From Andalucia godoyi And28 (lineage: Eukaryota > Protista > Jakobida): DNA of 64,000 nt. The notes below the pieces were generated by a model. It did not search any database, had not been told where the DNA came from, and saw only the letters and a list, made by a program, of their open reading frames with translations. The stretch is from NCBI GenBank assembly GCA_009859145.1, contig VRVR01000041.1, forward strand, positions 62,001 through 126,000. The letters are read 5' to 3'. Position numbers and translations under genes: made by a program. This document shows, piece by piece, positions 1 to 50,380 of this stretch (its first letter is position 1; every line of letters starts with the position of its first letter).

Positions 1-18
1 ACTGTCCGAAGGCAGGAT

Positions 19-1908
19 GTGGTGGCTGCAACGGTGGTCGGTGACGTTCGGAGCCTTGTGCACGCTGTTCACTTCTATGAGAATATGCATGCGAAGTGGG
101 TCAAGGCGGTGAAGAAGGAAAAACAAAGGAAATCAAAAGGGAAGTCAATTCCAAAAGTGTGGACTTTTCATCCATTCGACAGGGAGGAGGCACGCACGGG
201 ACTCGTTGTCGCCGATGCCGGTGCCACGCATCAAGCCGCGACCAGCCGCGACCAGCAAAAATCAGTCATGGTTTCCATGGTTCCAAGACGAGAGAATGCA
301 GTCGAGTTTTGGGAATACCGCATGAAGCTAGCTGCTGAAGCGGTACGCGAAGAACAGGCCAAGGCCCGACCGACGAACCGGACCGAGTCCGCGTCAGCAT
401 CCGAATCCGATGTCGCATCTGGGCATGGGTCTGCATCCCCCAACTCCGCTGGGCGATCGAGTCCGTCCCCTTCGGCCTCAACATCAGCGCCAGTTTCAAA
501 TCCAAAAACAAAAACAAAGACAAAGAAGGAGGAAAAGGAAAAGGAAATGGAAAAGGTGGCAGAAAATCCAAAACCAAAGGCGGCATCTCGCAACTCTGGA
601 TTCATCATCCTGTCGTCCGCTTCTCTGGCCGCGACGGTCCTCGAAGCGTTCCCAAACAGCGCCGTTTCTTCTGTGCTTCCACTCTCCATGCTGGCCTCCC
701 ATGCGAAATCAAAACATGTACGAATTCACCCAGCACCGGAACCAAGCGACATCGAATGGGGGCATATGGGCATTTCCAAGCGCGAGAAGGCCCTGCGTGT
801 CTTTGGAGTGCATTTGATGCTTGTTGGGCTTCTTCTCTTCTTTTCAACACCGCTTGCAATCTTGCACACCCTGTCAGAATTATTCGGGATTTCATTTGAC
901 GGCAGCAATTCTGGAGGCTCCGTCACCGGGCTTGGAATTCTGACGTCGATCGTGTTTTCCTTTGTGCCCTCGTTGCTTCTGTACTTGATTTCCCTCATTC
1001 TGCCGTCCCTCATTTGGTTTCTGACCACTCTGGAAGGCCATCGAACTTACTCGCAGATTCAGTACAAATCGAGTCAGCGAAACTTCATGTATATAGTCCT
1101 GTCGTCTCTCGTGCTTCCGACGGTTGCCATCTCCCTCGCAGATTTCATCCAAAAGTACCAGTCCAATGGCAGCAGCTTGGAATCAACGGTCGCGAATGCA
1201 TTTCTACCCGAATCGGGACTTTTCTTTTTCTTGTACGTAATGCAGGCTGCGTTTGTGGGCTCGTCTCTGGATCTCCTCCGCCTCGGAGACGCATTCGTCT
1301 CACTCTTTGAGGACCACGAAGGCGACGAAGAAGACGCCGGAGAAGCGGGCGAACTCAAACAAAAACTGCAACGCCCAGAACAAAAGGTGGAGTTCGAATA
1401 CCCAGTCTTGGTATCCATTGTTGCCGTCTGCTTGACGTATGCGTGGTTTACCCCGCTGATTGTTCCCGTTGGCCTCTTCTACACGGCTTGCAAACACCTT
1501 GTGGATCAGTACCATATTTTGCACATCAGTCAATCGTTCGACAAGGATGCGTGGTCTCCGCTGTCCGACACGGTCTCCAAAATTGTGGATCGCAAGCGGC
1601 TGTTGCTGTGCTGCCGGTTCCTTTTGGAATCCATGGCAATCGCGCTCGTGTACCTCTTCTTGTTTTTCTCTCTTCGATCCCTGTTTCCGCAAGCTTCCAT
1701 CATCCTGCTCGGTGTGTTTTCCACCTTTGCCGTGATTCTGCTTGTCTACTCTGGAACATGGAAATGGACGGCGGATTTCGTCCCGTTTTCGTTTTCCAAG
1801 AATGAAGAAGAGCCACTGCTGCACAGGGAATGCTGTTTGGATCCTATGCTTGCAAAGACTGCGTACGATTGCCCCTATCTCATGTATGAGCTCCATGATC
1901 ACTTCTAA
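19..1908 (+). CDS. OSCA/TMEM63/CSC1 calcium-permeable stress-gated cation channel, C-terminal part (5' end probably outside the window)
   Basis: Motif HPAPEPSDIEWGHMGISK followed by multiple hydrophobic helices (FFSTP, YVMQAAFVG..DLLRL, LTYAWFTPLIVPVGLFY..KHLVDQYH) typical of the RSN1_7TM region. The frame appears open from the window edge. Confidence 0.85.
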   Translation: MVAATVVGDVRSLVHAVHFYENMHAKWVKAVKKEKQRKSKGKSIPKVWTFHPFDREEARTGLVVADAGATHQAATSRDQQKSVMVSMVPRRENAVEFWEYRMKLAAEAVREEQAKARPTNRTESASASESDVASGHGSASPNSAGRSSPSPSASTSAPVSNPKTKTKTKKEEKEKEMEKVAENPKPKAASRNSGFIILSSASLAATVLEAFPNSAVSSVLPLSMLASHAKSKHVRIHPAPEPSDIEWGHMGISKREKALRVFGVHLMLVGLLLFFSTPLAILHTLSELFGISFDGSNSGGSVTGLGILTSIVFSFVPSLLLYLISLILPSLIWFLTTLEGHRTYSQIQYKSSQRNFMYIVLSSLVLPTVAISLADFIQKYQSNGSSLESTVANAFLPESGLFFFLYVMQAAFVGSSLDLLRLGDAFVSLFEDHEGDEEDAGEAGELKQKLQRPEQKVEFEYPVLVSIVAVCLTYAWFTPLIVPVGLFYTACKHLVDQYHILHISQSFDKDAWSPLSDTVSKIVDRKRLLLCCRFLLESMAIALVYLFLFFSLRSLFPQASIILLGVFSTFAVILLVYSGTWKWTADFVPFSFSKNEEEPLLHRECCLDPMLAKTAYDCPYLMYELHDHF

Positions 1909-1991
1909 GCCGTACTCGTCAACAACGGCTTTTTTCTTGACGTTCAGCGGAAAGAGTATCTCCCAATTCAGTGGCGGGAAAGAGAGTGAGA

Positions 1992-1994
<3 letters not shown>

Positions 1995-2028
<34 letters not shown>
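1995..2028. repeat. (GA)n microsatellite between convergent 3' ends
   Basis: Direct GA dinucleotide run in the sequence. Confidence 0.9.
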
Positions 2029-2031
<3 letters not shown>

Positions 2032-2208
2032 GGGGAATTTCTTTTGAACAATAAAAAGAAAACAAGAAACTTTTTAAAATTTAAAAATACAAATGATGAT
2101 GATAATAATAATGGTAATGTTCGCAAGCGCCGGTGAAAGAAAGGAAAAAACTGAGCAGCCAAAAAAGAAAAGAATTCGAAAAGAAGAGCAACGATACCTC
2201 CTTGCGTA

Positions 2209-3792
2209 TCACATGCCAAGTGGACGCTTGGAAGGGACAGGAGCAAAAGACGATGAATGTCGGTGTGGGTTGATTGGATTGGTCGCAACAACATGCTGGT
2301 GCTGCTGTTGTGGCTGTTGTGGCTGTTGAAATTGATGCTGCTGCTGCTGATGCTGTTGCTGCGTCGGCGGCTGCAGATCCAAGGTCTCAAGAGTTTGACC
2401 AGCCAGGACTTCACTGCCATCGAGCTGCTCGTGTCGATTCAGGATGCCAGAACCATTCGTGAACGTGATTCCAGTCTGGGACTTCAGCATTTCAATTTCT
2501 GCCCGTGCAAGTCGAAGCTGCTCTGCCAGCCGCGCATTCTCTTCAAGCAAGGACTGTGTTCTTACTTCGAGCTGCTCAACATACGCCTTCTTTCGCAGTC
2601 TGGACTGGTGTGCGGCTTCTCGGTTCTTTTGCAGTCTTCGAAATCTCTTCACCTCGCGATCTTCTTCTGCAGTCAGGCCCCGTTGCTCCAGCTTTGCCCG
2701 AGCCTCGATTTCTGCGGCTCTGTCAACTTCTTCTGCAGAGCCATGCTCGTCATCGTACTGCATATCCATCAGCGTACTCCCCGCTCCGACATTGCTCGGA
2801 TAAAGCATTCGCGGTGCTGCAAACGGCTGCTGTCGGCCGCATAACTCCAGCAATCCATTGACGCCCGATCTACCCATACCATGCGACGAAGAAACCAGTG
2901 GCAGTGGGGCTTCCGAGACACCGTTGCTGCCGATACCGATACCGATACCGTTGCCGTTGCTGATGCCGTTGGCAGTAATGATATTCTTTGGATTGCTAGT
3001 GCCAATTCCCAAACCATGCTGCTTTTCGTCAACTGGGTAAGAAGAGGGCGGAGACGGCGCCGAAGACGCGACAGCATCGCTTGCCAATCGCGCTCGCTTG
3101 GGCTTCGGATGCTCGATCGCAAGCGGAGCCGAGGTGGCTGATGATGCATCGAGGCCCGAAAGCAAGTAACTTGACGATCCGGCGAGGGGGGATGCAGACG
3201 GCGCACGCATCAGCGGGGTCGGCACATGCAACGGAGTCGATGATGACTGGTCAAACTCGGCATCTGCATCCACAGAACTCGAAACACTCTTTTTCGGTGC
3301 CTTTCCAGAATCCGTCTTTTCACTCTCGCCCTCTTTACCCGGAAGCGAAACGCCCCTGCTTGCCGCCGCCGACGACGACGACGACGATGATGATGATGAT
3401 GATGATGATGGAAGAGGCGGTGGTGGTGGTGGCGGTGGCGGCGGTTGCTGTTGAGCGAGAAAGGTGGACATGTCAACAGCTTCATCCATCCAGTTGTCGA
3501 AACCGAACCGGGAGATGCTTTCATCGTCAAACAGCGCGTCTGATTGTGGCACATCTTCCTTTTCTGCAGCTTCCCACAAGATGGACCGATAAATATCCTC
3601 GGTCGACATGTCCGGCCACTGCGGGAAAAGACCGTGACTGCCTCCATATGACCCTGACCCTGACCCCGACCCCGACCCTGATGCTGATGCTGAGGCTGAG
3701 GCTGAGGCTGAGGCTGAGGCTGAGCCAGAAGAAGAACGATAGACATCAGGCAGTGGATCAGTGGCTGTTGGATACGCCCTCGACGACGCCAT
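2209..3792 (-). CDS. bZIP transcription factor (ATF/CREB-like basic region), 527 aa
   Basis: RRLQKNREAAHQSRLRKKAYVEQLE basic region followed by a heptad leucine zipper. Low-complexity S/P/G/Q tracts. Start reassigned to ATG 3792 (MASSRAY); the upstream in-frame part is UTR-like and overlaps CFAP45. Confidence 0.9.
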   Translation of the reverse strand: MASSRAYPTATDPLPDVYRSSSGSASASASASASASASGSGSGSGSGSYGGSHGLFPQWPDMSTEDIYRSILWEAAEKEDVPQSDALFDDESISRFGFDNWMDEAVDMSTFLAQQQPPPPPPPPPPLPSSSSSSSSSSSSSAAASRGVSLPGKEGESEKTDSGKAPKKSVSSSVDADAEFDQSSSTPLHVPTPLMRAPSASPLAGSSSYLLSGLDASSATSAPLAIEHPKPKRARLASDAVASSAPSPPSSYPVDEKQHGLGIGTSNPKNIITANGISNGNGIGIGIGSNGVSEAPLPLVSSSHGMGRSGVNGLLELCGRQQPFAAPRMLYPSNVGAGSTLMDMQYDDEHGSAEEVDRAAEIEARAKLEQRGLTAEEDREVKRFRRLQKNREAAHQSRLRKKAYVEQLEVRTQSLLEENARLAEQLRLARAEIEMLKSQTGITFTNGSGILNRHEQLDGSEVLAGQTLETLDLQPPTQQQHQQQQHQFQQPQQPQQQHQHVVATNPINPHRHSSSFAPVPSKRPLGM

Positions 3793-3992
3793 TTCTCCTC
3801 GTCCTTTGAACTGTGAGTGGTGGCTCCTTCTGTTTATTATCACAATTGCAAGGCGGAAAACAAAGTTTGAAAACAATAAGAAGAAGAAGAAAATAATAAT
3901 AATAATAACCATCAAGGGAAAATATAATAAGGGGGAAAAAAAATCATGAAACAAAGGAGAGACACACGAATAAGCAAAAAAAGCTTTCGGGG

Positions 3993-4000
3993 TGACGTCA
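3993..4000. promoter_or_regulatory. Perfect CRE palindrome TGACGTCA about 200 bp upstream of the bZIP start codon
   Basis: The sequence is present at 3993-4000. Function is inferred only. Confidence 0.4.
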
Positions 4001-4006
4001 GCCGAT

Positions 4007-4045
4007 CGACACCTGGCGACACCTGGCGACACCTGGCGACACTGG
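4007..4045. repeat. Tandem 10-mer CGACACCTGG x3 plus one degenerate copy (each perfect copy contains the E-box CACCTG)
   Basis: Direct repeats at 4007, 4017 and 4027, and CGACACTGG at 4037. Confidence 0.85.
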
Positions 4046-4051
4046 CAGCTC

Positions 4052-5485
4052 TTACAGCAGCTTGTGCTTCTCGAGGGGTTTTGAGGCGATTTCGACGGTG
4101 TACTTCTCGGGGACGCCCATTTCTCGGAGCATGGCGAGCTTTTGCGCGCGGACGCTTTCAAGCTTCGCGCGGTGTTCGTCCTCGACTCTCCTGATTCTCG
4201 AGCCTTCTTCCATGAACTCTCTTCTGGCCTTGACACGCGACTCTCTCGTCTCGTCGATCTGCGCCTTGAGATCGCGATTGTATCTCGCGAGTCGTTCTCG
4301 CTCCTCTCTATCCTTCTCAGACTGCGCACCCTCTGTCTGCTTCTCGAGTTCGCGTCGCGCAGCCCACTCTTCTCGCTGTGCGGCCGCGACTGCCGCTAAC
4401 CGCCGTTCTCGCTCCAGCATTTGCATTTCCCTTGCGCGTGCAATCTCTGCCGCTTGCCTCTGCCGCTTCTCGCTTTCTTCTTGCTCGCGCGCTCTTGCCG
4501 CTCGTTCCTTTTCTTCCTGTGCCCGACGCGCACGCAACGCATCCTTCTCCGCCGCCTTATCCTGCGCCTTCTCTTGCATCGCACGCAACCGCGCCGTCTC
4601 CCGCTCTTTCTCCTGCCGCACGCGCTCCACCTCGGCCGCACGCGCCGCTTCCCGAGCATCCTTGGCAGCCAAGTACGCGGCAATCCGCAGCTCTTCTGCC
4701 GCCTCCGTTTCTCGCGCTGCCATCTTCAGTCGCATCTGCTCGGCATTTGCAATCCCGACCTCCACCATCAACGTCCGCGCCGCCTCCTTGCGCTGGGCTG
4801 CAAGCGCCGCGTCCTCTGCCTCCATCCGCGCCACGTGCGCCAACATTGCATCCTGCTCGCGCTTCTTGCGCTCCAATTCCAGCACGCGCGCCTTCTCCCG
4901 CGCATCAATCTGCGCCCGAATGACTGCCGCGCCCGCCTGACGCTCTTCCAGTCGGCGACGCTCGCGCTCCTCATACAACCGAAGCGCCTTCAATCGCTCA
5001 AGCTCCATCGCCGTGTCTGCATACGCCGCTGCCCGACTCTCCGCCTCTGCAAGCGACTGCTTCTCTGCCAACTGCGCCTCACGAATTGTCGCACACTGTG
5101 CATACAGCACAAGCTGGTTTAGACGCTTCACCGCATCGTCATTCGCAAGCTTTGCCTCTTCTGCCGCGCCTAGCGCCCCTGCAGAGGACGACAACTCGCC
5201 GCTGTGGTTCAACGGCTGTGACTGGGATAGTTGCTGCTGCTGCTGCTGGTGTTTGAGTGCATCAATTCGACGGATGCGGGACTTGCGATCCTCCGTCGAT
5301 GATGCCGTCGTTGTCGCTCCATTGGTCGGAGACTCGGAATGTGGAGCAAGCGACCGCGACAAAGTTGGGCTCGCATGTGTGGCGGCGGTGGAAAATGAAG
5401 CGAGTTTGGAAAGCTCATCACGCGTCAGAACAACCGCGTTCACAGTTGGTGCACTCGGCGCTGGCTTGGAATACGCTCGCACCAT
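4052..5485 (-). CDS. CFAP45: Cilia- and flagella-associated protein 45 (CCDC19), trichohyalin-plectin-homology coiled coil
   Basis: VKRLNQLVLYAQCATIREAQLAEK, MELERLKAL and the C-terminal LREMGVPEKYTVEI are characteristic of the family. Long E/R/A coiled coil. Confidence 0.85.
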   Translation of the reverse strand: MVRAYSKPAPSAPTVNAVVLTRDELSKLASFSTAATHASPTLSRSLAPHSESPTNGATTTASSTEDRKSRIRRIDALKHQQQQQQLSQSQPLNHSGELSSSAGALGAAEEAKLANDDAVKRLNQLVLYAQCATIREAQLAEKQSLAEAESRAAAYADTAMELERLKALRLYEERERRRLEERQAGAAVIRAQIDAREKARVLELERKKREQDAMLAHVARMEAEDAALAAQRKEAARTLMVEVGIANAEQMRLKMAARETEAAEELRIAAYLAAKDAREAARAAEVERVRQEKERETARLRAMQEKAQDKAAEKDALRARRAQEEKERAARAREQEESEKRQRQAAEIARAREMQMLERERRLAAVAAAQREEWAARRELEKQTEGAQSEKDREERERLARYNRDLKAQIDETRESRVKARREFMEEGSRIRRVEDEHRAKLESVRAQKLAMLREMGVPEKYTVEIASKPLEKHKLL

Positions 5486-5875
5486 TGTTTGTTTGATTAT
5501 TTTTTTGGTGTTGTTTTTGTTGTTTTTTTTCTTTTCTCTCCCCTTTCTGTTTTATGGCTTGCTTTTCTATCACTCACCAAATCCGGAATGTATATACCCG
5601 ACAACTGGAAAACGAACTGGAAAAGCCGAGAAGGAAAAGATGGAGAAAAGCAAAAAAGAAAAAACGGAAATAAAGGAAAGGCAAGAAACAGGATTCGAAA
5701 AGGACGAAAAGATCAGTTTGAAGACGGTTGGATGAAGTCGTAGTATCAAGTGATTCTTCACCAGTCCACTCGTGCAGCCTCAAGTTATTTTTGTTTTTCT
5801 GTTTTTGTTTACAGCAAGTAGGCTACATTTCTTATTTTTTTAAACGAGTGTCCAGCAATGAAAGCGAATGAAAGA

Positions 5876-6175
5876 TTATGACGGTTTTTGAGACTGTGCG
5901 AATTGCTGGGCGATTTTCATAGTTTCTTGCGAGACCTTGGTCATTGCATCTTTGTGGGCAGCCACGACGAGATCAGACACGATGATGGGGTCTCCTCTTT
6001 TCATGATTGCGGGGTCAATCTCGACTTTTTTAAGCTGATAAAGCCCGTTGAGCGTCACCTTGACTGCCCCTACTCCAGCCTCTCCAAGTGCCGAAATCCC
6101 ACTCAGCGCACTCTGCATCTGTCCAAGCTGCTTCAACTGCGATGCTCCAGACACAAGCGACTTCCAATCCACCAT
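5876..6175 (-). CDS. ybaB: YbaB/EbfC family (nucleoid-associated / STIC2-like) protein, 99 aa
   Basis: GEAGVGAVKVTLNGLYQLKKVEIDP...DLVVAAHKDAMTKV matches the family signature G.aG.G.VkVt.nG......v.Idp......lEDLi.AA.ndA..kv. The length is typical of the family. Confidence 0.88.
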   Translation of the reverse strand: MVDWKSLVSGASQLKQLGQMQSALSGISALGEAGVGAVKVTLNGLYQLKKVEIDPAIMKRGDPIIVSDLVVAAHKDAMTKVSQETMKIAQQFAQSQKPS

Positions 6176-6676
6176 GTTCTCCTCCTCCTCTTCTTCTTCT
6201 TCTTCTTCTTTTTTCTTTCTCTATTTTTTTTTTTTTAAATGTTTTTCCTTGAACAGCCTCGGCGTAAATATGAACACGTCTCTACACAAAATCAAAACAT
6301 GAATGCTATTTTAATGAATAATAAATAAATAAAAAGAGGAAGAAGAAGAAGAAGAAAACGAAAAGAACCCGATGTGCAGATTCAAGCGTCACAACGATAG
6401 CTGTAATAAACCGACTGTACATCGCACTTCTGCCCTGACTCTAATTATTTTTTTTTTAAAAATTGTTTTCTGACCCAACAAACACTCTTCCTCTTTCTCT
6501 TTCTCTTTTTTCAGCTTTATTTTTATGCGTCTTCTTGTTCATCGTTTTCCTGTTTTGATTTTCGTTTTGTTTGTTCTTTCTTTTGCCACTTGTCTTTTCC
6601 GCTTGTGTTGTCTGCTTTCGTTTTTTTTCTGGTGGTGGTGTTGTTGTTGTTGTTGTTTGGACTTGAACTTTGGGAA

Positions 6677-7489
6677 ATGCTTGCAGGTCGACTTTTGTCC
6701 CGGGCATTGCCGTTTGCAGCGGTTGTTCCAATGATGAGTGCGACTCTTGTAGCTTCGGATGATGCTGTTCCGGCACCGTCGTATCCGTGGGACCATTTGT
6801 CACCCTTTTCGTCGTTTGACCACTCGTCGATCCGCCGTGGACTCCAAGTCTACCGCGAGATTTGTGCGTCGTGCCACTCTCTCTCGCGTGTCGCGTACCG
6901 CAATCTTGTCGGCGTTGCAATGACGGAGGAGGAGGCAAAAGCGTTTGCTTCGTCGGTCGAGGTCCAGGACGGTCCAAACGACGCAGGCGAAATGTTCATG
7001 CGGCCCGGAAAGCTCTCCGACAAGTTTGTTGCTCCGTACCCGAACGAACAGGCTGCTCGCGCAATGAACGGAGGCTCGTATCCGCCGGATTTGTCGCTGA
7101 TTGTCAAGGCTCGTCCGCAGCATGAAGACTATCTTTTCGCACTGCTTACGGGCTACGGACATGCCTCTCCTGCTGGAGTTTCTCTGCGAGAGGGGCTCCA
7201 CTATAACCCGTATTTCGCGGGCGGAGCAATCGGAATGCCCCAGCCCTTGTATGACGGATCGATCGAGTACGAAGACGGAGTCACGCCGAACACCTTGCCG
7301 CAGCTCTCGAGAGACGTTGCAACGTTCCTTGCATGGGCGTCCGAACCGGAACACGACGAGCGCAAACTCATGGGTATCAAGTATATGGGAATCATGACCG
7401 TCGTTGCTGCAACTGCGTTCTTTTACAAGAGACACAAGTGGGCGCTGCTCAAGTCTCGTCGCATCGAATTCAGACAACCAGGAAAGTAA
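6677..7489 (+). CDS. CYC1: Cytochrome c1, heme protein of mitochondrial complex III, 270 aa
   Basis: [29 protein letters not shown] (CxxCH), [41 protein letters not shown] and a C-terminal TM. Start at ATG 6677. Confidence 0.97.
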
Positions 7490-7652
7490 AAAGACCAGCA
7501 ACGTACTCTGTGTGCTAAACCAGGGAGGGCAAGTAAAAGATGTTTGAAGATGAACAATTGAGCATGATGAACTGAGCATGATGATGAATCGTCAATAGAG
7601 GATCCAAATACTGTACATTACTATCGAGGAAGAAAATAAAACGCAACCGCCA

Positions 7653-8198
7653 CTATGTGGAAGGGTTCGCCGCGCATGCGTCCTTGTATTTTTGTGCGAG
7701 GACTTTCGCGTAAGCAATCTGGTCTTTCCAGAGCTGTGCTGCATGAGCGTTGAGTGGTGAGTCGCAGTTTGGATCCGCAAGCAGCGACTGAATCGAGAGC
7801 AAGATCGTCTTGATGTTGTAGACCGCAGACCACTGGTCCTTGAGAATGTCGAGGCAGATGTTCCCGTACGAATCAACGTTGGGGTGGAAGCACGGCGTCT
7901 CGAACCGGACAGTAGGAGCAGAGTAAGGATACTGTGCAGCGAACTGCAGATGGAGCTTATACCGATGTCCAGCATACGGCGTGTCCACAGACCCTTCAAT
8001 CGTCCCAGTCCACGAAAACAAGTTGTCGCCATCCGGAAATGCGCTAATGCCAGGTGTCTTGCTCGTCATCAGCGACATGAGCTCAGACTGCAGTCGCTTC
8101 ACTGTAGACTGTGCATCGTTCTGTGCAGACGCAGACTGACCATTCGACTTTGAAGTTGTGGTTCCGGAAACGGGAAATCCAGAAGCAATATGGTTCAT
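7653..8198 (-). CDS. UBE2C: Ubiquitin-conjugating enzyme E2 C (UBE2C/UbcH10-like), 181 aa
   Basis: [49 protein letters not shown] with the catalytic Cys. Start at ATG 8198. Confidence 0.92.
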
Positions 8199-8702
8199 GC
8201 TGATCGCGCGATACTGCTCCTCCAAAACAAAAAACAAAAAAAAATTGAAGATGAACAAGAAGAACGGTGGAACAAGAACGAACGAAAAAGTAATCAAGAT
8301 GATGATGATGATCGAAAAGTCAAACAAAAAAAAAACAGAGAAGAAAAAGAAAAAGAAAAAAGAAAAAGAAAAACACTCACAGCGCAAAGAGGACGTTATG
8401 TTTTTCACAAACAGTGAATTCCCGACAACGCACTTTAAACAAGAAAAAGGCCGCATATCTCTCTCTCACGCACACACTCTCTCTCTCTCTTTTCCTTCTG
8501 CAACAACAAAAACCCTACCCGTTCTCTTTTTATTTTATTTGACAGGACGGCTTGCATCAATTGAGTCTTCAGCATGTGACTACGGTGGTGGACGAAGCGA
8601 ATGGGTGCGGCTGAATTCATTTTACCATTATTATTACTAATATTATTTGTATGTTGTTGTGTTTTTGGTTTTTCTTTGTCCGTGTGCTGTGAGCAGGGCA
8701 TC

Positions 8703-10655
8703 ATGAAGACACGGAGTCGAGAGAAGAGATCAGAGAAGAGATCAGAGAATAGGAAACGTGAAGATGTGTCTGCGCCGCCACCGTCACCGCCGTTGCTGCT
8801 GTCTTTGAAACCGGGCAAGCTGGAAGACGGGCCCGAGTGGGACAATGAATTGCACATTTTGACGCTTTCGTCACCGAACGCCCAATTAGCATACTGCGGG
8901 CTTCTCAAGTTCAGATTGCTTGAAGGAAGCGTTGAAATTCAGGGAGTGACTATATCGGAGAGAAATGCATCGTTCGTGTCGTTTGTCGCTCCGCATCATG
9001 GCTGGTTTCTGCTGCGCGTTGCCATACACAAATCCAATCATGCAAAGTTGCTTCTCAGCTACCACCATACGTCTACGTGCAAGTCTCGATTTCCACGCAG
9101 GCCTCTTCCGGAATACTGCGAACTCCCCTTGCATGGTACGTTTTCTTCTGATTTTCCAAGCCTCCGACTCGTAAATCCCAAGAGCGCGGGGTGTGCAATT
9201 TCAACTCTTCGAGATGTCGACGAATGCGACGTTCGAGATCTTGTGCAAGTACGGACTCGCCTGAATTCGCTGGTGGTAAACCATGCCCCAGGACGTGTTT
9301 CACAAAAGATCGCGCCTGTGATCATGGTGATGGGACGTCGTGCGGTTGGCAAATCCACGTACACCCGGCAGCTTGTAAACTCCTTACTGATGTCACGATT
9401 GCACCAGGACCAGGAAAAGCCGGCACAAATGGCCCGCGTTGTTGTTCTCGATTGTGATCCTGGACAACCATTTGTTTCGGGACGTGTTGGATGCGTGACG
9501 CTCTCTGTGATTTCCCGGCCCATCCTGCACTCGGTCCCACTCTTGGATGCGTATTGCGCCGAGGACGTGGCGTCGGAGCATTACAGCCTTTTTTACGGAT
9601 GTTTGGCACCAGATGTCGATCCTTTGCGGTTCATGGCTCTGGTCAAGGCTCTCTTTCAAAGATATGTAGATCGCTATGCTTCAAATCCGAGTAGCAAATC
9701 CTGGACTCCGCTCGTCGTGCATCTGAGCGGGTTCCTACGAGGAATCGGTGTGGAAATGGCAGCCGAGATGTGCCAGCTCATGATGCCGGATCACATCGTC
9801 CACATTAGTCCGAGTCCCGCAGCTGACTATCCTATTCAGGTGCCGCTGCAGCCAATCGGAGTCTTTACGAGGGAAGTCGTGTGGTCGCTTGAAAGAGATG
9901 CAGCGGATGCTCAACGTGTGAGAGTGCACCATGTCGCTGCATGGAAAAGGCCTGTAGACGGCCCTGTTTCAATGGATGGCGGGTCGGCGGTCCAAGAAAA
10001 TGAAACTGGACTTGGCGATCCAGATGAAATGAACAGTCTCGTGAACTTGCCTGCGGAGGACAGCAAGAAAAAGCCCAGCACTGGCCGGATGGATGCTGGA
10101 TCACAGAGGCTGTGCATTCTTGCCTCGTACTTCCGAAGTTTGTACTTAGCCGACAGTTGCGATTCTCTTCCTGATGCCGCATCAATGGACTTGGCGGAAG
10201 TGTTCTGTCGCGCTGCCCCTTACTGTATTTCCCGGGTAGCAATTCGGAATCTGGGAAGCCATGTGCTGACCAACGGACAGATCGTCGGTCTGCTTGATCG
10301 CCATGATGCCTGTCTGGGGCTCGGTATTCTTCGTTCGATAAGCGTGACCAATGATTTGCTATTCATTCTCACTCCTCTGGACCAGGCACAGGTGTCCGAA
10401 TGCACGGCCGTTGCTGCGTCCACAGAGATGTCGATTCCCGTGCAATTTATGAGATCTCTCGATGAAGCAATCAGTGCAGCGGACTCCGTCGATCAACCGG
10501 TCTTTGAGCCTCCCTTTTCCTCCAAGTTCTGCGTTACGGGTGCTCTTTACGGGTCCACAATCATGACGGGTGGTCTGCGACCTTCTGGAGCAATTGACAG
10601 ACAATCAGGAGGCAAAGCGTCTTCTCGAAAGCGTCTTCTCCCTGACACTTCCTGA
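8703..10655 (+). CDS. NOL9: Polynucleotide 5'-hydroxyl kinase NOL9/Grc3 (Clp1 family), 650 aa
   Basis: P-loop variant GRRAVGKST, VLDCDPGQP, TPLVVHLSGFLRGIG, and C-terminal CLGLGILRSISVTNDLLFILTP. Confidence 0.85.
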   Translation: MKTRSREKRSEKRSENRKREDVSAPPPSPPLLLSLKPGKLEDGPEWDNELHILTLSSPNAQLAYCGLLKFRLLEGSVEIQGVTISERNASFVSFVAPHHGWFLLRVAIHKSNHAKLLLSYHHTSTCKSRFPRRPLPEYCELPLHGTFSSDFPSLRLVNPKSAGCAISTLRDVDECDVRDLVQVRTRLNSLVVNHAPGRVSQKIAPVIMVMGRRAVGKSTYTRQLVNSLLMSRLHQDQEKPAQMARVVVLDCDPGQPFVSGRVGCVTLSVISRPILHSVPLLDAYCAEDVASEHYSLFYGCLAPDVDPLRFMALVKALFQRYVDRYASNPSSKSWTPLVVHLSGFLRGIGVEMAAEMCQLMMPDHIVHISPSPAADYPIQVPLQPIGVFTREVVWSLERDAADAQRVRVHHVAAWKRPVDGPVSMDGGSAVQENETGLGDPDEMNSLVNLPAEDSKKKPSTGRMDAGSQRLCILASYFRSLYLADSCDSLPDAASMDLAEVFCRAAPYCISRVAIRNLGSHVLTNGQIVGLLDRHDACLGLGILRSISVTNDLLFILTPLDQAQVSECTAVAASTEMSIPVQFMRSLDEAISAADSVDQPVFEPPFSSKFCVTGALYGSTIMTGGLRPSGAIDRQSGGKASSRKRLLPDTS

Positions 10656-10798
10656 GGTGCACGATCCACCCGTAATTGTGGGCTCTGCATGATGACGTAA
10701 ATGTACATTCAGCTGGTGTTTATGATGTTTGAGGGTTCTGCATTCCAATCAAAAAATAGAAGAGAAAACACAGAAGTGCGCATGATACAATGCTAGTA

Positions 10799-11491
10799 CT
10801 AGGGACTTTCCTGTGCAAACGTGGCGATCTTGGGCTGTCGCGCTGCTTGAGGATTCCTCGCGTCTGTCGAAGACTGTTGCACCTTCTTCATAAACGTACG
10901 GACTTCGTCGAGGTTCTCGAATTCGACTCGAGTTCCCTGGCCGGCGCCTGCATTCTGCATCGCAATCGCCCGTTCCACAAGTCTGTTTAGTGTGTCCTTG
11001 AGCATTTCCTGGAAGTCTTCGGTGACTTGACCGATCCGCTTTCGGTGCTCCTCCAGCGTGCGCTCCTTTAATTCGAGCTCGTAAGCCTGGTCTCGCTTCA
11101 CCTCTTCGAGCGCTAGCCTCTGAAGCTCGATTTGATCCAGCAGTTCTGCTTTGGAATTCTCAAGACTGTTGATCTTGTCCACCAGTTGGTCTTGCCGAGC
11201 CTTGTAAAGCCGCGTGAAGTCCGTGCAAACTTCTTTCCGATCCACAAGCTGCTCCGCTAAATCCTGCTCGTGAACCAGGACTTTAGAGCGCATTTCAATC
11301 GCCTTGGCTCGTTCCACGCTCACTTCGGCAGTGCGATCATCAAGAATTCTTTCAAGACACTGTATCCGCGCTTCTAAACGCTGTAGCTTCTCATCGGAGG
11401 TGAAGTCCACTTGAAACACGGTGGGTCCAGAGATAGCTCCCTTCTTCCCCTTCTTCCCTTTTCCTCCTTTCTTTCCTTTCTTTGGTGGCAT
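10799..11491 (-). CDS. Coiled-coil flagellar protein, CCDC153/DRC12-like, 230 aa
   Basis: MPPKKGKKGGKGKK N-terminus, a coiled coil, and DFTRLYKARQDQL and FQEMLKDTLNRL segments resembling CCDC153. Confidence 0.65.
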   Translation of the reverse strand: MPPKKGKKGGKGKKGKKGAISGPTVFQVDFTSDEKLQRLEARIQCLERILDDRTAEVSVERAKAIEMRSKVLVHEQDLAEQLVDRKEVCTDFTRLYKARQDQLVDKINSLENSKAELLDQIELQRLALEEVKRDQAYELELKERTLEEHRKRIGQVTEDFQEMLKDTLNRLVERAIAMQNAGAGQGTRVEFENLDEVRTFMKKVQQSSTDARNPQAARQPKIATFAQESP

Positions 11492-11556
11492 ATTAAGTTG
11501 TGCACGGCGGTGGAGAACGTACGAGACAGAATTCCAAGAAACACACTCAATCGAAT

Positions 11557-11630
11557 TCGTTTCGTTTCGTTTCGTTTCGTTTCGTTTCGTTTCGTTTCGT
11601 TTCGTCGTGTCTCGTTTCGTTCGTTTCGTC
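11557..11630. repeat. (TTTCG)n pentanucleotide microsatellite
   Basis: About 9 perfect TTTCG units plus degenerate copies, upstream of the DRC12-like gene. Confidence 0.9.
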
Positions 11631-11974
11631 TTTCTTTCTTTCACAACGGACAAATGATTTTGCCCTCATACAAGACTGTCAATCGGCATCGCAAAAAAAA
11701 CACCCCCATGCGTATGAGCAGAAGACGTTACGTTTTGCAATCGCATTTTGTCTTGGGCAGCTATTGCGAGCAACGCTAAAAGACGAAGCGTGCAGGAAGC
11801 AGCGCGCTTTGAAAATGGATTTACAGCATACACATCAATGAGCAAGGCACCATCCTGCGTCTGCGACGTGCAGGCCTCGGGTCGTTGGCAGACTCTTCGC
11901 AGATGTGGCATTCCCGCATCGCGAGTATTGGCAACGAACTTCTCAATCGCCTACAATGATGCATCACTGGGACG

Positions 11975-14500
11975 TCACAGCAACGACAAGAGACCGGATA
12001 CTTGCGCTGACGCATCCTCCGGCACGCCAAACCCAGAATCGGCAAATCGCGAAAGAATGGAGCGGAGAGAAACGATGGATTCTCCCGGTAAATAGGAACG
12101 ATACGTGCTCGACAATACGATCCATTTCTGCAATGATGTACTGGTGATTGAAGAGAATATGCTGGAAACAAACGAGGGCGAGGCAACAACGAGGGACTGG
12201 AAAGATGGGCTTCCGCGAAGGAGAAATTGCGCAAACATCTCCAAGGAAGCGGCCGACAATTTTGCGGCTGAATCAACAAACAACGAAACCAAGTTGTTGT
12301 CCAAGAAGAACGGGCTTACTGCAGAAAACAACAAGCAAGTTCGCTCTGCTCCAGAACCAAGCGCAGATTGCTCCAAGATCGTCCGCAGCACTTCTGAATC
12401 GGAAGCCATAACACTGAACAAGCATCGACATATGTTGAAAAACTCCACTCCAGTAAAAGGCACATTTCGAAGAACGGAAACAATGAAGGAAAGAATATTG
12501 CTGGCATGGTCATCCGAAGAGCTGACCTGCATCGACAGACCGCACATCTCAAATAAATGTTCAAGAGCAGATGGCGACACAGGATGGCCATTCACAACGC
12601 TAGTAAAACTCTTCGCGACTGCTGTCATGAGTTCTTCATTCTTGAAAACATCGAGAAAGAACAGAACATCCACAAACAAACACTGCAGGGTTGCGTGTAA
12701 AGAAAGAAACGGTCCATAGATGTCCTTTCCTGTTTTGCGAGATTTGCAGTAAAAGAACGGCCCGAGTTTGGACAAAAACATTTGCGATTCCTGGACCGTC
12801 AACCGATGCGACCGCACCGTATCCAAAACGATGCGACCGATGAGAAGCGTAAAATCTGCGTCTGCAGCTCCCACGACGAACAGAAGCTTTGGCAGGTTCA
12901 CGATCCAAGTGCTCGGAAGCAGGCTGGAGTGCTGGGGGAAATCCGTGGCAATGGTATGCATGAACTGCAGCAGCTTCTTCTTGTGAACTGAGAGATGATG
13001 AACCTGCTGAAATCGCGACAAAACGGCATTGATCAAATCGACGGCTTGTTCGGATTTCAGGGAAGGTAAACAGAGAAACGAAAAGGCCATTTCCAAAACT
13101 TCCCCTAGCATCCACGACTGGTGAGATGCCATATTGTCGAATCCCGAAGCAAAGTACGCGAGAATGAACTGCAAGACGCGGTCATCCGAAGGAGACAGCA
13201 ACAGCAGAACTTTTGCGCAGACGATATTCCATTCAACATTCTGAGGATCAGAAGGAAAGTCGCAAAGAACATGTTTCATAATCTGTACAGGAAACTCCTT
13301 TCCGACTTCGTGGATGTGATTTTCCAGAATGTATAAAGCAACAACGACAATATCAATCTTGGAATCGCGTGACTCGGATTCCAAGAACATGCTGACGATA
13401 TACTTTGATATTGTCACCCATGGAACATGGTGTGTTGGGGATCTGCGAACAGCTTCATGGGATTTTGACGAACGTGTCGCGGCGTCTTCGGAGCTATCTC
13501 CAAACAAAGCATGCGACCGGCGTTTCAGGAACTCCCACGCGGTGGAAGGAGCAGAAGGCGAAATGGACGGGTGATCGAGATACAACGTGACAGCCGAAAC
13601 CTTGGAATTTTTGGAGACATGCAGCGCTGTTCCAGAGGATGCGGTCAAGCCTGTGCTTTGGATGAGAACATTCCACGGACTCGTGTGGTGTTCATCTTTT
13701 GCAGAAGTCACACCGGACATCAGCGCCTTGATGTCCACGAACCACCGCAGGATGGAAACAAAACACAGCATAAGCGATCTCTTTGTGGTTTTGCTCAACG
13801 TGAATAGTGTCTGTGCAATAGACGGCACAAGGACCTTCATGCAACTTTCCTCGAAATCAATACTTGAAGCCAAAGCATGAACCTGAGCACTGACATCCTT
13901 CTTCATTCCACTGCTCTGGGTCTTCGGTGCGTGGGCATCCTCTGTCACAGCAAGTTTGAACATCTTGCAGAAGTCGAGGAGGCAGCGAGAAGCATCGTTC
14001 TGAATTACGAACCCTTGACTTGTCACGCCGGAGTTCAGATACAGTATCCACAAAGAAAACAGCGATTGAGACGAAACGAACAGTGGGAAAAGATCTTTGG
14101 AGGCTGAGACCACAGCCGATCTTACGCTCATCTCGTCGTCTGAGAGTCGCCGGCCCAGAACATCGACAGCAGGCCGCAACAATCCCACATGAGACGGGTG
14201 CTCCAGATTTCCCTCCGGTTGCAGCAGCTCGCGGATGCCCAGAATTCCGTCTTTCCTAAAGTCCTTGTTAAAGTGAGATGCAGCATTCGTGATGCATTGT
14301 GACAGGCTCCATTGTCGATGGGTCACAGGGATGCTCGTCGACTGTGACTTGAGAATTGACTGCGTGATAATCGTTAGTTTCCGTGTCTTGATCGACAGCG
14401 GGTTTGCAGGCTGTGGCCGTTTTCCAAGTTTCACCTTGACCTTTTGAAAATCGGAAGAGCCCTTCTTCTTGGCTGACGACAGCCACGTTGATTTTCCCAT
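11975..14500 (-). CDS. TEX10: TEX10/Ipi1 pre-rRNA processing (Rix1 complex) protein, 841 aa
   Basis: N-terminal DFQKVKVKLGK..P, then HFNKDFRKDGILGIREL and DDEMSVRSA (Ipi1_N-like), followed by HEAT-like helical repeats. Start at ATG 14500. Confidence 0.82.
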   Translation of the reverse strand: MGKSTWLSSAKKKGSSDFQKVKVKLGKRPQPANPLSIKTRKLTIITQSILKSQSTSIPVTHRQWSLSQCITNAASHFNKDFRKDGILGIRELLQPEGNLEHPSHVGLLRPAVDVLGRRLSDDEMSVRSAVVSASKDLFPLFVSSQSLFSLWILYLNSGVTSQGFVIQNDASRCLLDFCKMFKLAVTEDAHAPKTQSSGMKKDVSAQVHALASSIDFEESCMKVLVPSIAQTLFTLSKTTKRSLMLCFVSILRWFVDIKALMSGVTSAKDEHHTSPWNVLIQSTGLTASSGTALHVSKNSKVSAVTLYLDHPSISPSAPSTAWEFLKRRSHALFGDSSEDAATRSSKSHEAVRRSPTHHVPWVTISKYIVSMFLESESRDSKIDIVVVALYILENHIHEVGKEFPVQIMKHVLCDFPSDPQNVEWNIVCAKVLLLLSPSDDRVLQFILAYFASGFDNMASHQSWMLGEVLEMAFSFLCLPSLKSEQAVDLINAVLSRFQQVHHLSVHKKKLLQFMHTIATDFPQHSSLLPSTWIVNLPKLLFVVGAADADFTLLIGRIVLDTVRSHRLTVQESQMFLSKLGPFFYCKSRKTGKDIYGPFLSLHATLQCLFVDVLFFLDVFKNEELMTAVAKSFTSVVNGHPVSPSALEHLFEMCGLSMQVSSSDDHASNILSFIVSVLRNVPFTGVEFFNICRCLFSVMASDSEVLRTILEQSALGSGAERTCLLFSAVSPFFLDNNLVSLFVDSAAKLSAASLEMFAQFLLRGSPSFQSLVVASPSFVSSIFSSITSTSLQKWIVLSSTYRSYLPGESIVSLRSILSRFADSGFGVPEDASAQVSGLLSLL

Positions 14501-15503
14501 CTTTTCACGCCCTCGAAAGAACGCAGAGTAGCAAGAAGAATCTGGCACCGACAAAGCAGGCGAAACGTCCTGAATATGCTGTGGTATTCGGTGAAGCGTT
14601 TGAAGCGAATGTATCTACAGTGGATTTTCCACCGAGAGAGATCCACGCGTGTTTGTTGTTGTTGTTGTTGCTGTTGTTGTTGTTGTTTTTAATGTGTTTA
14701 AATTAATCATAAAGAATGGGAACATGAAGTGTATCTTTCATGTTCGAGAGATAAATTGACCTAATGACATGCACTCGCGTACAGTGTCAGTTGAAAGAAA
14801 AAATAGAAGGGAAACAAAAGAAAAACAGAAGGGAAGCAGAAGAGGGATCGAACGGGTGAACAGATTGAAAAAGGAGCCACAAAGTGGGGTTGGTGGCAAT
14901 GTGGCATCAATTGATGCCGTCCGCTGCATCAAGTCGACTAGTGCCCTTTTTTTTTAACGCGAAAAAGGGGGAGCTTTCACTTTGTGTTTTTGTGTCGGTT
15001 TCCGTTTTCCTTCTCGTTCTCGTTCTTCTCTCGTTCTTCTTTCTTTCTTCTTTCTTTCTTTTCCTTGCCCCGAGTATCGTTCCACGTTGCGCCTTCTATG
15101 TAGGTCAAGGTGGTGGTAATTTTTTCTACCGGGCAGAAGCTGGGCTTTGTGCGACTCTGTGCATCATTTCTATGGATACGCAGTTACAAACTACTGAGCG
15201 AAATTTCTACGCTAATGCAATCTGCACTTATTTCACGTTAAAGAAATTCAGAAACTTCAAAACAAGGAAACACAAGAACGATCATGAGCATGAGCACGAG
15301 GTTGAACATGAAACACGGACGCAACATGCTGTTAGCGGTCTCCAACAAGACAAGACACCGCAGTGTCCGGAAATACGAACAAGAATGGATCTGTCGCGAA
15401 CAGATGCTCAAAAATACTATTTACGCTCACGCTCACATTGTAAAAAGACATTCCGATCGCAGTCTTTGCAACAAACGGAAAAAGGGGGGAAACGCACACT
15501 AAC

Positions 15504-17875
15504 TTAAAAACGCTCTGGAAATTTGGCATACCAAGGCGGCTGAGATCCGTCTGCTTCCTTTGCTCCCTTGGTAACTTCGATCCTCAGTTCTTTCAACGCC
15601 GCCGCAACCTTTGCCTTCCCTTCAGCATCATTCTTGTCCTTCAAAAAGTTCTTCATCACCAACCCGTACCGAACTTGCCCATTTTCCGCATGCTTGCCCA
15701 TGAACTCAAGCACTGTTCGCGCAAAAGGAGAAAGTGACGTAGAACTCAACATCGTCTCGACGTAACCTTGCTTTGGAGGCGACTCCGCCGACTGGCGGCT
15801 CTTCTTTGCTGGCCTGTCCGAGTCTTGGCCGTCCTCCTCGGGTTGCGGACGCTTTCGAGTTGTATCCTGCGACAAGTATTCCTCAATGGAAAGGTGGCTT
15901 GCCTCTCCGCTCGGTTTCGATGTGACATCGGAAGGCGATTTCTTCTCTTCCTCCTCGTCTTCATTTTCGTCTTCGTCTTCGGCGTTATCCACTTCTGAAG
16001 CCGCATCAGACCCCTCTCCAGAATCCTCTGCATTACTATCTTCCTCTTCGGCGGGAGATTCGTACTTTGCGTCATCCAGACCCTCTTCATCACCGGCAAA
16101 TCCTTCGAACACATCAAAATCCGCATCCGCGCCGCTTCGAGCGAATAAAGCATCGTCATTCTGCTGCTGCTTCTTCATGAATCCCGAAACTTGGCTTTCG
16201 TGTTTGGAAGATGCTTCCATAGCTGCCTGCAAGTTGGCCTGACTCTTCTTGAAAATGTGAAAATGGCCAATCCCCGGTTTGCGAGAAGAAAAGACTGTCT
16301 CAATTTCCTCCTGGTCGGTTGGGCGAGAATGGACCCGAGCAAATTGGAACCAAGAACCCGGAAAAAACACATCAACAACACTGCCCGTTTTCCTCGGACC
16401 CATCAAGACTTCTTCGCGTTCTCCCAACTCTCTTTTCCCTGCGTACCTTTTGGACTGTTGGAAACTGTCTCTACTGGAATTCTCTCTGTCCAGCGCTTCC
16501 TGAATGTACACCGATTTGAATTTCTCAGGGTTCTCACGGAAACTCTTCATTTTTTCATCTCTTTTCAGGTCAATGAATCGCACTCTTTCCATCCGCTTCT
16601 TCTGGTCTTTAGACAACTCTGGCTTCTCCGTCGCCAGCAGAGGAACCTTCAGTTTCACAAAACGCAAAAATTCGGCACCTCGAGAAAACGTCGCAAAGTC
16701 GATGGCGTCTTTGAAGTTTCCAACAATCCAGGAATCCTGATGGAAACTGTTTGGATCGCCTTCAACACGGAGTTCTTCGACTGCCTCAACGAAAACCGTC
16801 ATCAATCCAGGGTCCGCTCCCTGCAAACTCTGGGCAACTTGCGGGAAATGAAACTCAAAAGCAGATCGTAAGGACAAGTCATCATAGAGTTCTCTTTCAA
16901 GTTCCGTGTACAATACAGTACCGTAGCTACTCCGTTTCGTAAAGTAGTTTTCATCAACGGGTGGTGTATCATTCCACTTTGACGACGGGAAAACACGCAG
17001 CAACGAGGCCGCTTTTTCGAGCGCCTCTCTTAGGAGCATTTCATCTGCATGATCGGTGAACACGTCGTTCAGAACATTCAGCAGGTCCGAAAACGCCAGA
17101 ATGGGACGCTGGTGCGCAACAATCTCACAATTTTTCTGTGGAAAGTTCACTCCTCGATTGTTTTTCACCATCACAACAACTGGCAACGCGTGATGGGACG
17201 GCAACATGTGTTTGTCCGCTAAAATATGCGCTGACATGTGCAGGGAACCGTGATAAGGATTCAAGTGCATTTGTGTCACATGTCGGTCGAAATCACTCGC
17301 TGTAGGAACTCTGCCAATGCCAACAAATACTTCGCAAATGTCCTTCAGAGACTGTTCTCTTTCCTTCGGAAGAAGATAGTCCGGTGGATTGACGATCGCG
17401 AAGTCGATAGAAATGTTGTCCATGAGCCCATTTTCCAGAATGAAATAAGAGACCTCGTCAGTCAGGTCAAAACGAGTCGGCGAGCCTTCCGTCAACTTCG
17501 TGAAGTCTATTTCGAAAAGCGCTGTTAGCCATTTTTGAAGCAGAGCAAGACACGCACACACACACACACACACGAGAGAGAGAGAGAAAGAAAGGGAAAG
17601 GGAAACCCAGAGTGAAAAAAGAAGAAATGCATACTTAGATTGATTGCACCCAAAAGTTTAGATGCTGGTGCATACGAGGCAGACGGCTTTGTGTTAACCA
17701 CTACTTGCACTCCATGTTGTTCCAGAAGTGCACGTTGGACTACCTGCAATCTTTCTGGAAGATTGATCAAACGAAACAGAGCATCTTTAATAAGGCTGCA
17801 CTGCGCAAGTCCCTGCGCTTCCAAGAAAATGAGAAAGCGATCGTCAAAGAGCGACCGGCACGCAAGGATGGTCAT
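15504..17875 (-). CDS. Hypothetical protein, about 752 aa, two exons (17635-17875, 15504-17521); acidic low-complexity region near the C-terminus
   Basis: Long ORF. A phase-1 intron at 17522-17634 (GTATGC...GGCTAACAG) joins AINL-T-LFEIDF in frame. No recognisable family motif. Further upstream exons are possible. Confidence 0.7.
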
Positions 17876-48882: not shown

Positions 48883-50341
48883 ATGAGTGTCGTAGAGAGC
48901 CTCGGCACGGAAAGCGCACAACGGCAGCAGCCGCCGCCTATCTCAGTGTCGACGGCCAAGCCTCGGATTCTGCGCGTTCTGGTAGGGTCTCAAGTGTATC
49001 TCGTTCCTTCTGTGGTTGGAAAACGAAAGCTATCAACCTGGAAGATATTTCCATCTCTCACACGCATGGTTGCTTCTTCTGGCCAGTATGATGGGCCTAA
49101 CGTACCCTTCGCTGAAATGGGACAGTCTGTGATGCGCGAACAACAACGAGCGTTGGAAGAGCAGCCGCCGAACCCAAAGCCAAAGGATCTCGTTGCAGAT
49201 CTCGAAACAAGGGTATTTGAGAATTTCAAGAATTCGCATCGTTCTTCTTCACATACATCAACTTCATCATCATCAGGTTCGGGTTCGGGCTCGGGCCCAT
49301 GTTCTGCGAGAACCGCGGATGTCGCAGCAGCAAGTGTGCGTTCTGGATCAAACTCAAATTCGAATTCTCGTTGTGACAATCATGGTCTCGTCAGTACAAG
49401 TGGCTGCAGTATTGTGCACAGTGTTAATGATGGTGCCAGTGGTAGTGGTAGTGGTAGTGGTAGTATCAGTGCAAATGGCAGTGCTCCTTTTAATGGAGTT
49501 CGTGGAGTGGATTCGGCAGCGTCGTTTCCTTCCCGGATTGCTTCTGGAGGAACGACATCACACAGCAATCCTTCAGTGTCAGAGTCAACACACTCATCTG
49601 TGACCTCGTCATCGAATCGTGGAGAAGGAACGAACGGTGCGATACCGCAATTCGCCGGAGTGAAATCGGGTCTTTTCGACAGCAGTGTGAGCAACAAAAC
49701 GGAATCGGAAACGCGCGACAACGAGCTTTCTTTTGTATCCTATGACTCCACCAGCCAGCAATTCATTGTTTCATCTAGAAATCCTGAGGTTTATGCGGTT
49801 CTGTTTGACTGGCTGTTGAATGGTGTGTTTTTCGTTCCACATTACGTGTCTGTAGAAGACATTTTGAACGAACTGCAAGTTCTTGGGGCTCCCACTTCTG
49901 TTCTTCGAGAATTCAACCAGTCTGTGGCAAATTCCGACAGCCTGGGTTTGTCTTCAGCGCCCACAACAACGACCGACGAATCTCACCGAAGCACTGCCAC
50001 AAGACCTGGGATGTCGAATGCAGTCACAGATCGCAGAAATCCGCTTCCACCCTCAGCCGAGCTTGTCCACGATGTCGCGGATTCCATCCCGTATCGAGGG
50101 TCTGCATCATCTGGCAATCAAGCGTATCCCATCGAACAACAAACTGCCGGGGAATCGCGCGGCCCACCAAACTGCCCAGAATATTCGTCTTCATCGCCAT
50201 CCTCGCTCCGAAAGTCATTCTTGGTTGTTTCTGGTCATGAGTTTGTACCTGGTTCGGGACTCTCCAGTGGTGAACATGGCGAAAAGGCTCGACGGCCCAA
50301 TTCTCCGTCTGCTGCTGCTGTTGCTACTGTCTCGTGTCATC

Positions 50342-50380
<39 letters not shown>

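Follow-up and report, generated by a model that had tools for sequence, protein, structure and literature searches.

A Nucleus-Encoded YbaB/EbfC-Family Protein of the Jakobid Andalucia godoyi Is a Candidate Mitochondrial Nucleic Acid-Binding Protein

Andalucia godoyi, a heterotroph without plastids whose mitochondria are strikingly bacteria-like, is one of the jakobids, a group whose mitochondria serve as a reference point for the nature of the first mitochondrion. Why would the nuclear genome of such an organism encode a protein of the bacterial YbaB/EbfC type, and in which compartment might the protein act? The question is raised by a short gene in a 64,000-nucleotide stretch of Andalucia DNA (the window). 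A first-pass annotation described it as an intronless gene for a 99-aa YbaB/EbfC protein and offered two accounts, a mitochondrial factor kept from the endosymbiont or a laterally acquired protein of the cytosol or nucleus. Bacterial members of the family bind DNA as dimers. The Andalucia mitochondrion retains a bacterial four-subunit RNA polymerase, GreA, RnpA, RecA, TatABC, and tmRNA-SmpB along with further bacterial traits, and a homologue of mtTFA is absent (PMC7050145). YbaB is not included among the ten retained bacterial traits listed for these mitochondria (PMC7050145).

The gene is on the minus strand at positions 5876-6175 of the window, stop codon included, and begins with an ATG. 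The assignment draws on the open reading frame list, Pfam, PDB matches, an AF2 model searched with Foldseek, and codon usage. Contig positions are obtained by adding 62,000 to window positions, which places the coding sequence on the complement of VRVR01000041.1 67876-68175. This contig of 271 kb (271,106 bp) is from assembly GCA_009859145.1. Accession VRVR00000000 stands for the nuclear genome of Andalucia godoyi published by Gray et al. in 2020 (PMC7050145), and the lineage record places this jakobid in the Discoba.

Eukaryotic genes are found directly on both sides. The downstream neighbor, on the same strand at 4052-5485, encodes a CFAP45/FAP45 homologue with a TPH domain (Pfam TPH E 4.2e-65; PDB FAP45/CFAP45 E 1.7e-50). 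Divergent to the YbaB gene, on the plus strand at 6677-7489, is the gene for cytochrome c1 (ANDGO_06165, 270 aa, Pfam E 2.9e-91), a mitochondrial protein whose presequence is typical. Its product is identical to the GenBank gene call on VRVR01000041.1 and is listed in Table S1 of PMC7050145. The 390 bp that separate the YbaB stop codon from the CFAP45 start (5486-5875) must contain the YbaB 3' UTR and the CFAP45 promoter. The 501 bp separating the head-to-head YbaB and cytochrome c1 genes (6176-6676) are presumably a divergent promoter. This spacer is AT-rich: its GC content is 0.34, whereas the window as a whole has about 0.49. Immediately before the YbaB ATG (window 6176-6240) are a (GAA)n(GAG)4 purine tract and an A13 run, in agreement with the homopolymer-rich spacers described before. 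Beyond cytochrome c1, Pfam recognizes an E2 enzyme, a NOL9/Clp1-like protein, a bZIP factor, and an RSN1-type channel; farther along the window are genes for ubiquilin, NOL10, an HMG-box protein, a cyclophilin, and DPP-IV, among others. Two HMG boxes are encoded in a reading frame of 1446 aa at 48883-53223 on the plus strand (Pfam E 3e-24), and no Pfam domain is present in several other long reading frames of the window, including 15504-17573, 21756-24638, and 39177-41792.

Neither dnaX nor recR is near the YbaB gene, its neighbors being those for CFAP45 and cytochrome c1, also as first annotated. Absence of the dnaX-ybaB-recR neighborhood is expected for a nuclear gene. The usual bacterial arrangement was seen at a control locus (L006), a ybaB-recR pair.

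Given the bacterial-type family, could the gene be an assembly contaminant, a chimera, or a decaying pseudogene without function? GenBank has no gene call at its position. However, the contig is 271 kb long with eukaryotic genes on either side, and when 99-codon windows from host genes with Pfam support are ranked by codon score, the YbaB gene falls at the 45th percentile. Its GC3 is 0.57 compared to 0.53±0.07 for those host genes. The eukaryotic neighbors and the host-like codon usage together make contamination or a chimera very unlikely. The reading frame is intact and encodes all family-conserved residues, an identical 99-aa product is already in the protein collection (P0001), and an independent eukaryotic relative described below (P0123) keeps the same start and length class. 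We therefore regard an artefact or a pseudogene as highly improbable.

The GenBank gene index for VRVR01000041.1 58677-79489 has only cytochrome c1 within ±10 kb, in a region with at least eight clear genes (window 1-17500). GenBank annotation of the contig seems restricted to the published mitoproteome. If the annotation follows that set of 864 proteins, the missing call would fit absence of the YbaB protein from it. In the main text of both Andalucia papers, and in Table S1 outside its sheets G-J, we found no mention of YbaB/EbfC, PF02575, the neighboring gene identifiers, or the peptide.

We then asked how securely the protein belongs to the family. It matches Pfam PF02575 (YbaB_DNA_bd) over residues 15-94 of 99 with an E of 8.7e-18 and 64.7 bits, well above the 25.5-bit cutoff. 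Sequence searches of the PDB matched E. coli YbaB (E 2e-12) and H. influenzae YbaB (E 2e-11). For the NCBIfam equivalog TIGR00103, the score was marginally below the cutoff (48.1 versus 49.45 bits). On these sequence matches the Andalucia protein is a YbaB/EbfC member, as first annotated, but one whose functional equivalence is uncertified by TIGR00103. An AF2 model built from 44 homologues (mean pLDDT 89.3) has the topology a1-b1-b2-b3-a'-a2, with predicted helices at residues 4-25, 55-60, and 63-96 and strands at 28-33, 38-43, and 48-53. With this model, Foldseek retrieved 1j8b and 1pug as top matches (E about 3e-6, TM 0.65-0.8). Taking positions conserved in 90% or more of 254 homologues, with the core pattern G-x-x-G-x-G-x-V, D-L, and A..A, all nine are kept (G31, G34, G36, V38, G44, D68, L69, A73, and A77). 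The DNA-contact residues of the Borrelia protein vary even among bacterial members (PMC9610160).

The fold begins almost at the initiator Met. Residue 7 of the Andalucia protein aligns with residue 10 of E. coli YbaB, leaving no N-terminal extension. An in-frame stop is found 16 codons 5' of the ATG, and the 501-bp spacer on that side has three ATGs, all out of frame. The protein thus has no long presequence, as previously described.

The chemistry of the protein is another matter. We compared it and its closest relative, P0123, to 251 single-domain homologues. The pI is 9.35 for the Andalucia protein and 9.30 for P0123, compared to 5.20±0.83 for the homologues, only 2.4% of which have a pI above 9. 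The Andalucia monomer has a net charge of +3. Mainly the C-terminal helices account for the shift: residues 55-96 carry a net charge of +1 in Andalucia and 0 in P0123, versus -3.1±1.9. Helix a1 has a single acidic residue in the pair where the homologues have 4.0±1.3, with just one of the 251 as low. Its fraction of Ser, Thr, Ala, and Gly is 0.41-0.42 compared to 0.21±0.07. Both proteins also lack the Gly-rich C-terminal tail of the PPGxKLPF type common in homologues. Judged from sequence, this change from acidic to basic would fit a nucleic acid-binding organellar protein, with import putative.

Does the N-terminus encode an import signal? The Andalucia protein has no cleavable Arg-rich presequence, with its fold starting at residue 4, and as the first Arg is residue 60 there is no site of the MPP type. 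The first-pass annotation had suggested a cryptic amphipathic N-terminus. The depletion of acidic residues agrees with that suggestion; the modest hydrophobic moment (0.25-0.32) and the absence of Arg before residue 60 do not, leaving it weakly supported. Despite losing acidic residues, helix a1 has a net charge of +1, within the bacterial range.

These features are compatible with a second explanation, in which a bacterial YbaB was acquired laterally and is now a small basic DNA-binding protein of the cytosol or nucleus unrelated to mitochondria. Such a protein would need no presequence and no Arg among its first 59 residues, its basic pI would be equally suited to nuclear DNA, and it would be unnamed in the published mitoproteome, as is the case outside sheets G-J of Table S1. 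However, among the mitochondrial candidates published for Andalucia, about 16% likewise have no predicted presequence. The distribution of the gene bears on this explanation as well.

Searched exhaustively with phmmer, 1.84 billion representative proteins yielded 1039 matches with an E ≤ 1e-3, and only four of these were at E ≤ 1e-10. A word-indexed search with the Andalucia protein retrieved just the protein itself and one weak, actinobacterial-looking match. The closest relative is a metagenomic protein of 106 aa, P0123, with 48% identity and the start MVD[WF] common to both. P0123 is the reciprocal best single-domain match of the Andalucia protein, and the two cluster in 78% of 500 neighbor-joining (NJ) bootstraps. 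P0123 is encoded at positions 1268-1588 of contig L002 (JGI metagenome 3300042934, Ga0456364_0046635), between a gene for an ADP-ribosylglycohydrolase and one for Erg28. The contig spans 2.7 kb (1-2681) with a GC content of about 0.49 and closely spaced genes. Erg28 is, we assume, a eukaryotic marker family, which makes the contig eukaryotic. The Andalucia gene would then belong to a small eukaryotic clade and not be a singleton. There is no synteny between L002 and the Andalucia locus.

Beyond this one metagenomic relative, phmmer detected no wider eukaryotic distribution of the Andalucia-type YbaB among the 1.84 billion representatives. A metagenome scan with P0123 gave no match, and one with a three-sequence eukaryotic alignment returned only the bacterial ybaB-recR locus L006. 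Scanning genome contigs with the Andalucia protein yielded only two Puniceicoccaceae loci at 29% identity, uninformative on the donor. A single eukaryotic relative, with four matches below 1e-10 in a collection of this size, is what lateral acquisition might leave. On the other hand, the gene has the codon usage of its host, and the low identity to the eukaryotic sister, only 48%, implies long residence in eukaryotes.

The best bacterial matches have 35-45% identity to the Andalucia protein. Those named among the top matches are mostly from Alphaproteobacteria (Phenylobacterium, Marivibrio, and an alphaproteobacterial MAG), and none is cyanobacterial. As few of the top matches are named and one Spirochaetaceae cluster also ranks high, an alphaproteobacterial source is only a lead. 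The first-pass annotation had proposed an HMM search across eukaryotes and a phylogeny to trace the origin; the phmmer search and NJ tree revealed a eukaryotic sister and did not settle the donor. On the reading favored below, the Andalucia YbaB is of bacterial ancestry and probably came from the mitochondrial endosymbiont. The top matches also include two-domain YbaB proteins of 178-241 aa (metagenomic P0124, P0139, and P0144), which are tandem duplications or fusions.

Is any protein of this family at work in a mitochondrion? The PDB sequence search also retrieved mS60 of the Leishmania major mitoribosome at an E of 0.1, with the family motifs recognizable. A 78-residue aligned fragment of mS60 scored just under the Pfam YbaB_DNA_bd cutoff (E 3.4e-5, 24.4 versus 25.5 bits), and a 44-sequence YbaB profile matched the L. 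major and T. cruzi mS60 chains with an E of 1.1e-3. For a metagenomic mS60 fragment, the precomputed annotation gives PF02575 as a weak match. Foldseek aligned the Andalucia model with the mS60 chains 7ane_an, 7aor_an, and 6hiw_DM over 102 columns (E 7e-5 to 2e-4), ranking them directly behind the bacterial YbaB structures. Aligning the mS60 alignment to the YbaB alignment with hhalign gave a probability of 94.5% (E 7e-8). By these profile and model comparisons, the N-terminal part of mS60, about residues 41-123, is a YbaB/EbfC-like domain. In the literature searched we found no published link of YbaB with mS60, Trypanosoma, or mitoribosomes. A YbaB-derived protein is therefore at work in the mitochondria of another Discoba lineage.

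We also considered whether mS60 is a specific relative, or orthologue, of the Andalucia protein and rejected this. By phmmer ranking mS60 is no closer to it than to bacterial YbaBs, and the two group in 0.2% of NJ bootstraps. Homology at the level of the family is retained, while common descent within the Discoba is unsupported.

Two other observations concern mS60. A second small-subunit chain weakly resembles the Andalucia model (6hiw_DK, 7pua_DK, 7pub_DK, 6sg9_DK, 7aor_ak, and 7ane_ak; Foldseek E 0.02-0.1, 61-86 columns) and might be a YbaB-like partner of mS60; the YbaB sequence profile did not detect this chain. On a trypanosomatid-like metagenome contig (L003, ENA ERZ12593147), a lone in-frame TAG at codon 141 (5260-5262) interrupts the mS60 gene (4840-5262). 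Each of the two halves matches mS60 of L. major (E 2e-84 and 6e-82), and the adjoining 1245-aa reading frame is uninterrupted. The TAG may be a sequencing error, a sign of a pseudogene, or a codon that is read through.

With mS60 included, the eukaryotic YbaB proteins of known location are all organellar, the others being the plastid proteins STIC2 and LTA1 (PMC11480477, PMC9610160). This also speaks against a cytosolic or nuclear protein of lateral origin, which we consider somewhat unlikely.

The mS60 result suggests another role within the mitochondrion. The Andalucia protein could be linked to translation, either as a loosely bound mitoribosomal protein ancestral to mS60 or as a STIC2-like helper handing nascent membrane proteins to Oxa1, a role also raised in the first-pass annotation. 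In mS60, the YbaB fold is built into the small mitoribosomal subunit. In a four-sequence alignment, the Andalucia protein (QKPS), P0123 (FKPK), and mS60 (LKP) all have a KP where the domain ends on its C-terminal side. Plant STIC2, modeled as a YbaB-like homodimer, binds ribosome-nascent chain complexes and the C-termini of Alb3 and Alb4 (PMC11480477). The YbaB of Streptococcus pyogenes was an RNA-binding candidate in a screen (PMC12234827), and co-expression of E. coli YbaB increases the yield of membrane proteins (PMC9610160).

Other evidence does not favor a role in translation. The Andalucia protein is not listed in the mass-spectrometry composition of the small mitoribosomal subunit of Valach et al., nor among the six top candidates that the paper describes. 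mS60 is three times as long as the Andalucia protein and is not specifically allied to it in sequence. It has been described among proteins that face the solvent on the body of the small subunit (PMC8784144), whereas a helper of nascent chains would be expected at the exit of the large subunit. Ffh, FtsY, and SecY are also missing from Andalucia (PMC7050145). Of the bacterial-type insertion factors that the first-pass annotation proposed to look for, only Tat, as TatABC, is present (PMC7050145), and nothing specific favors the Oxa1 helper. We think a translation-linked factor rather improbable.

On balance, a mitochondrial location is favored for the Andalucia YbaB because of the eukaryotic sister gene, the acidic-to-basic shift, and the presence of mS60 in kinetoplastid mitoribosomes. 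The evidence thus leans to the first of the two accounts offered at the outset, though the choice between them is unsettled. To us the chances appear about even that this native, functional gene encodes a mitochondrial YbaB dimer that binds mitochondrial nucleic acid and is imported without a cleavable presequence. The 11-kDa protein would be made in the cytosol and then imported into the mitochondrial matrix, directed by its de-acidified N-terminal helix or by an internal signal. In the matrix, it would form the "tweezer" homodimer usual for the family. Being basic (pI 9.35, +3 per monomer), it could be expected to bind nucleic acid. The likeliest target would be the bacteria-like mitochondrial DNA. 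There the protein would serve as a nucleoid-associated protein, in an organelle whose RNA polymerase is bacterial and which lacks mtTFA. Alternatively, the putative dimer might bind mitochondrial rRNA or ribosomes.

A broader scenario can be drawn from the same data, though we hold it tentatively and think it doubtful. YbaB/EbfC may have been part of the ancestral mitochondrial toolkit, with a near-bacterial form kept in Andalucia and at least one uncultured eukaryote as a factor for packaging or expressing mtDNA and the same lineage giving rise to mS60. If true, jakobid mitochondria would gain one more primitive bacterial trait and mS60 a bacterial origin.

As Andalucia has no mtTFA, a mitochondrial YbaB would be a testable candidate for the factor that packages its bacteria-like mtDNA. 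The YbaB domain in mS60 means bacterial ancestry for a mitoribosomal protein supposed to be lineage-specific, and it fits the hints from plant STIC2 and the S. pyogenes screen that YbaB contacts ribosomes or RNA. If the Andalucia protein is instead cytosolic or nuclear, it records an old lateral transfer of modest significance. The relevance to mitochondrial evolution is moderate and would be greater if a mitochondrial localization and a wider distribution in the Discoba hold true.

The YbaB family and its plastid members, including rice LTA1, a plastid YbaB-domain protein (PMC9610160), were already known. In the literature searched, we found no description of a form that is basic, lacks the tail, and is encoded by the nuclear genome of a eukaryote without plastids, and nothing linking YbaB/EbfC with jakobids, Naegleria, LECA, or mitochondrial nucleoids. 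The form is new in this sense, and the first-pass annotation was right to call such a eukaryotic system little described. It had also allowed for a plastid-bearing host in which the gene would group with STIC2; this does not apply to a jakobid, plastid-lacking by established knowledge. To our knowledge the Andalucia YbaB, if mitochondrial, would be the first eukaryotic member of the family outside plastids.

Like plastid STIC2 and LTA1, the Andalucia protein is a nucleus-encoded member of the YbaB family, and those two are organellar (PMC11480477, PMC9610160). It differs from the STIC2 type in having no transit-peptide-like extension and no cyanobacterial member among its named top matches. 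With mS60 it has in common a YbaB-like domain whose fold aligns over the 102 columns, a basic character (pI 9.6 for the N-terminal domain of mS60), and, if the location proposed here is correct, a place in Discoba mitochondria. However, mS60 is 293-302 aa in length, with about 40 extra N-terminal residues and a C-terminal extension of ~180 aa, whereas the 99-aa Andalucia protein has no extension. Identity between the two is ≤27% in structure-based alignments and 34% for the 78-residue fragment in MAFFT. Compared to the bacterial YbaB/EbfC nucleoid-associated proteins (1pug, 1j8b, Borrelia EbfC, and Caulobacter YbaB), the Andalucia gene is nuclear and apart from dnaX and recR, and its product is basic with an acid-poor helix a1 and no tail, yet it has the same Pfam family, length class, fold, and conserved residues as these bacterial proteins.
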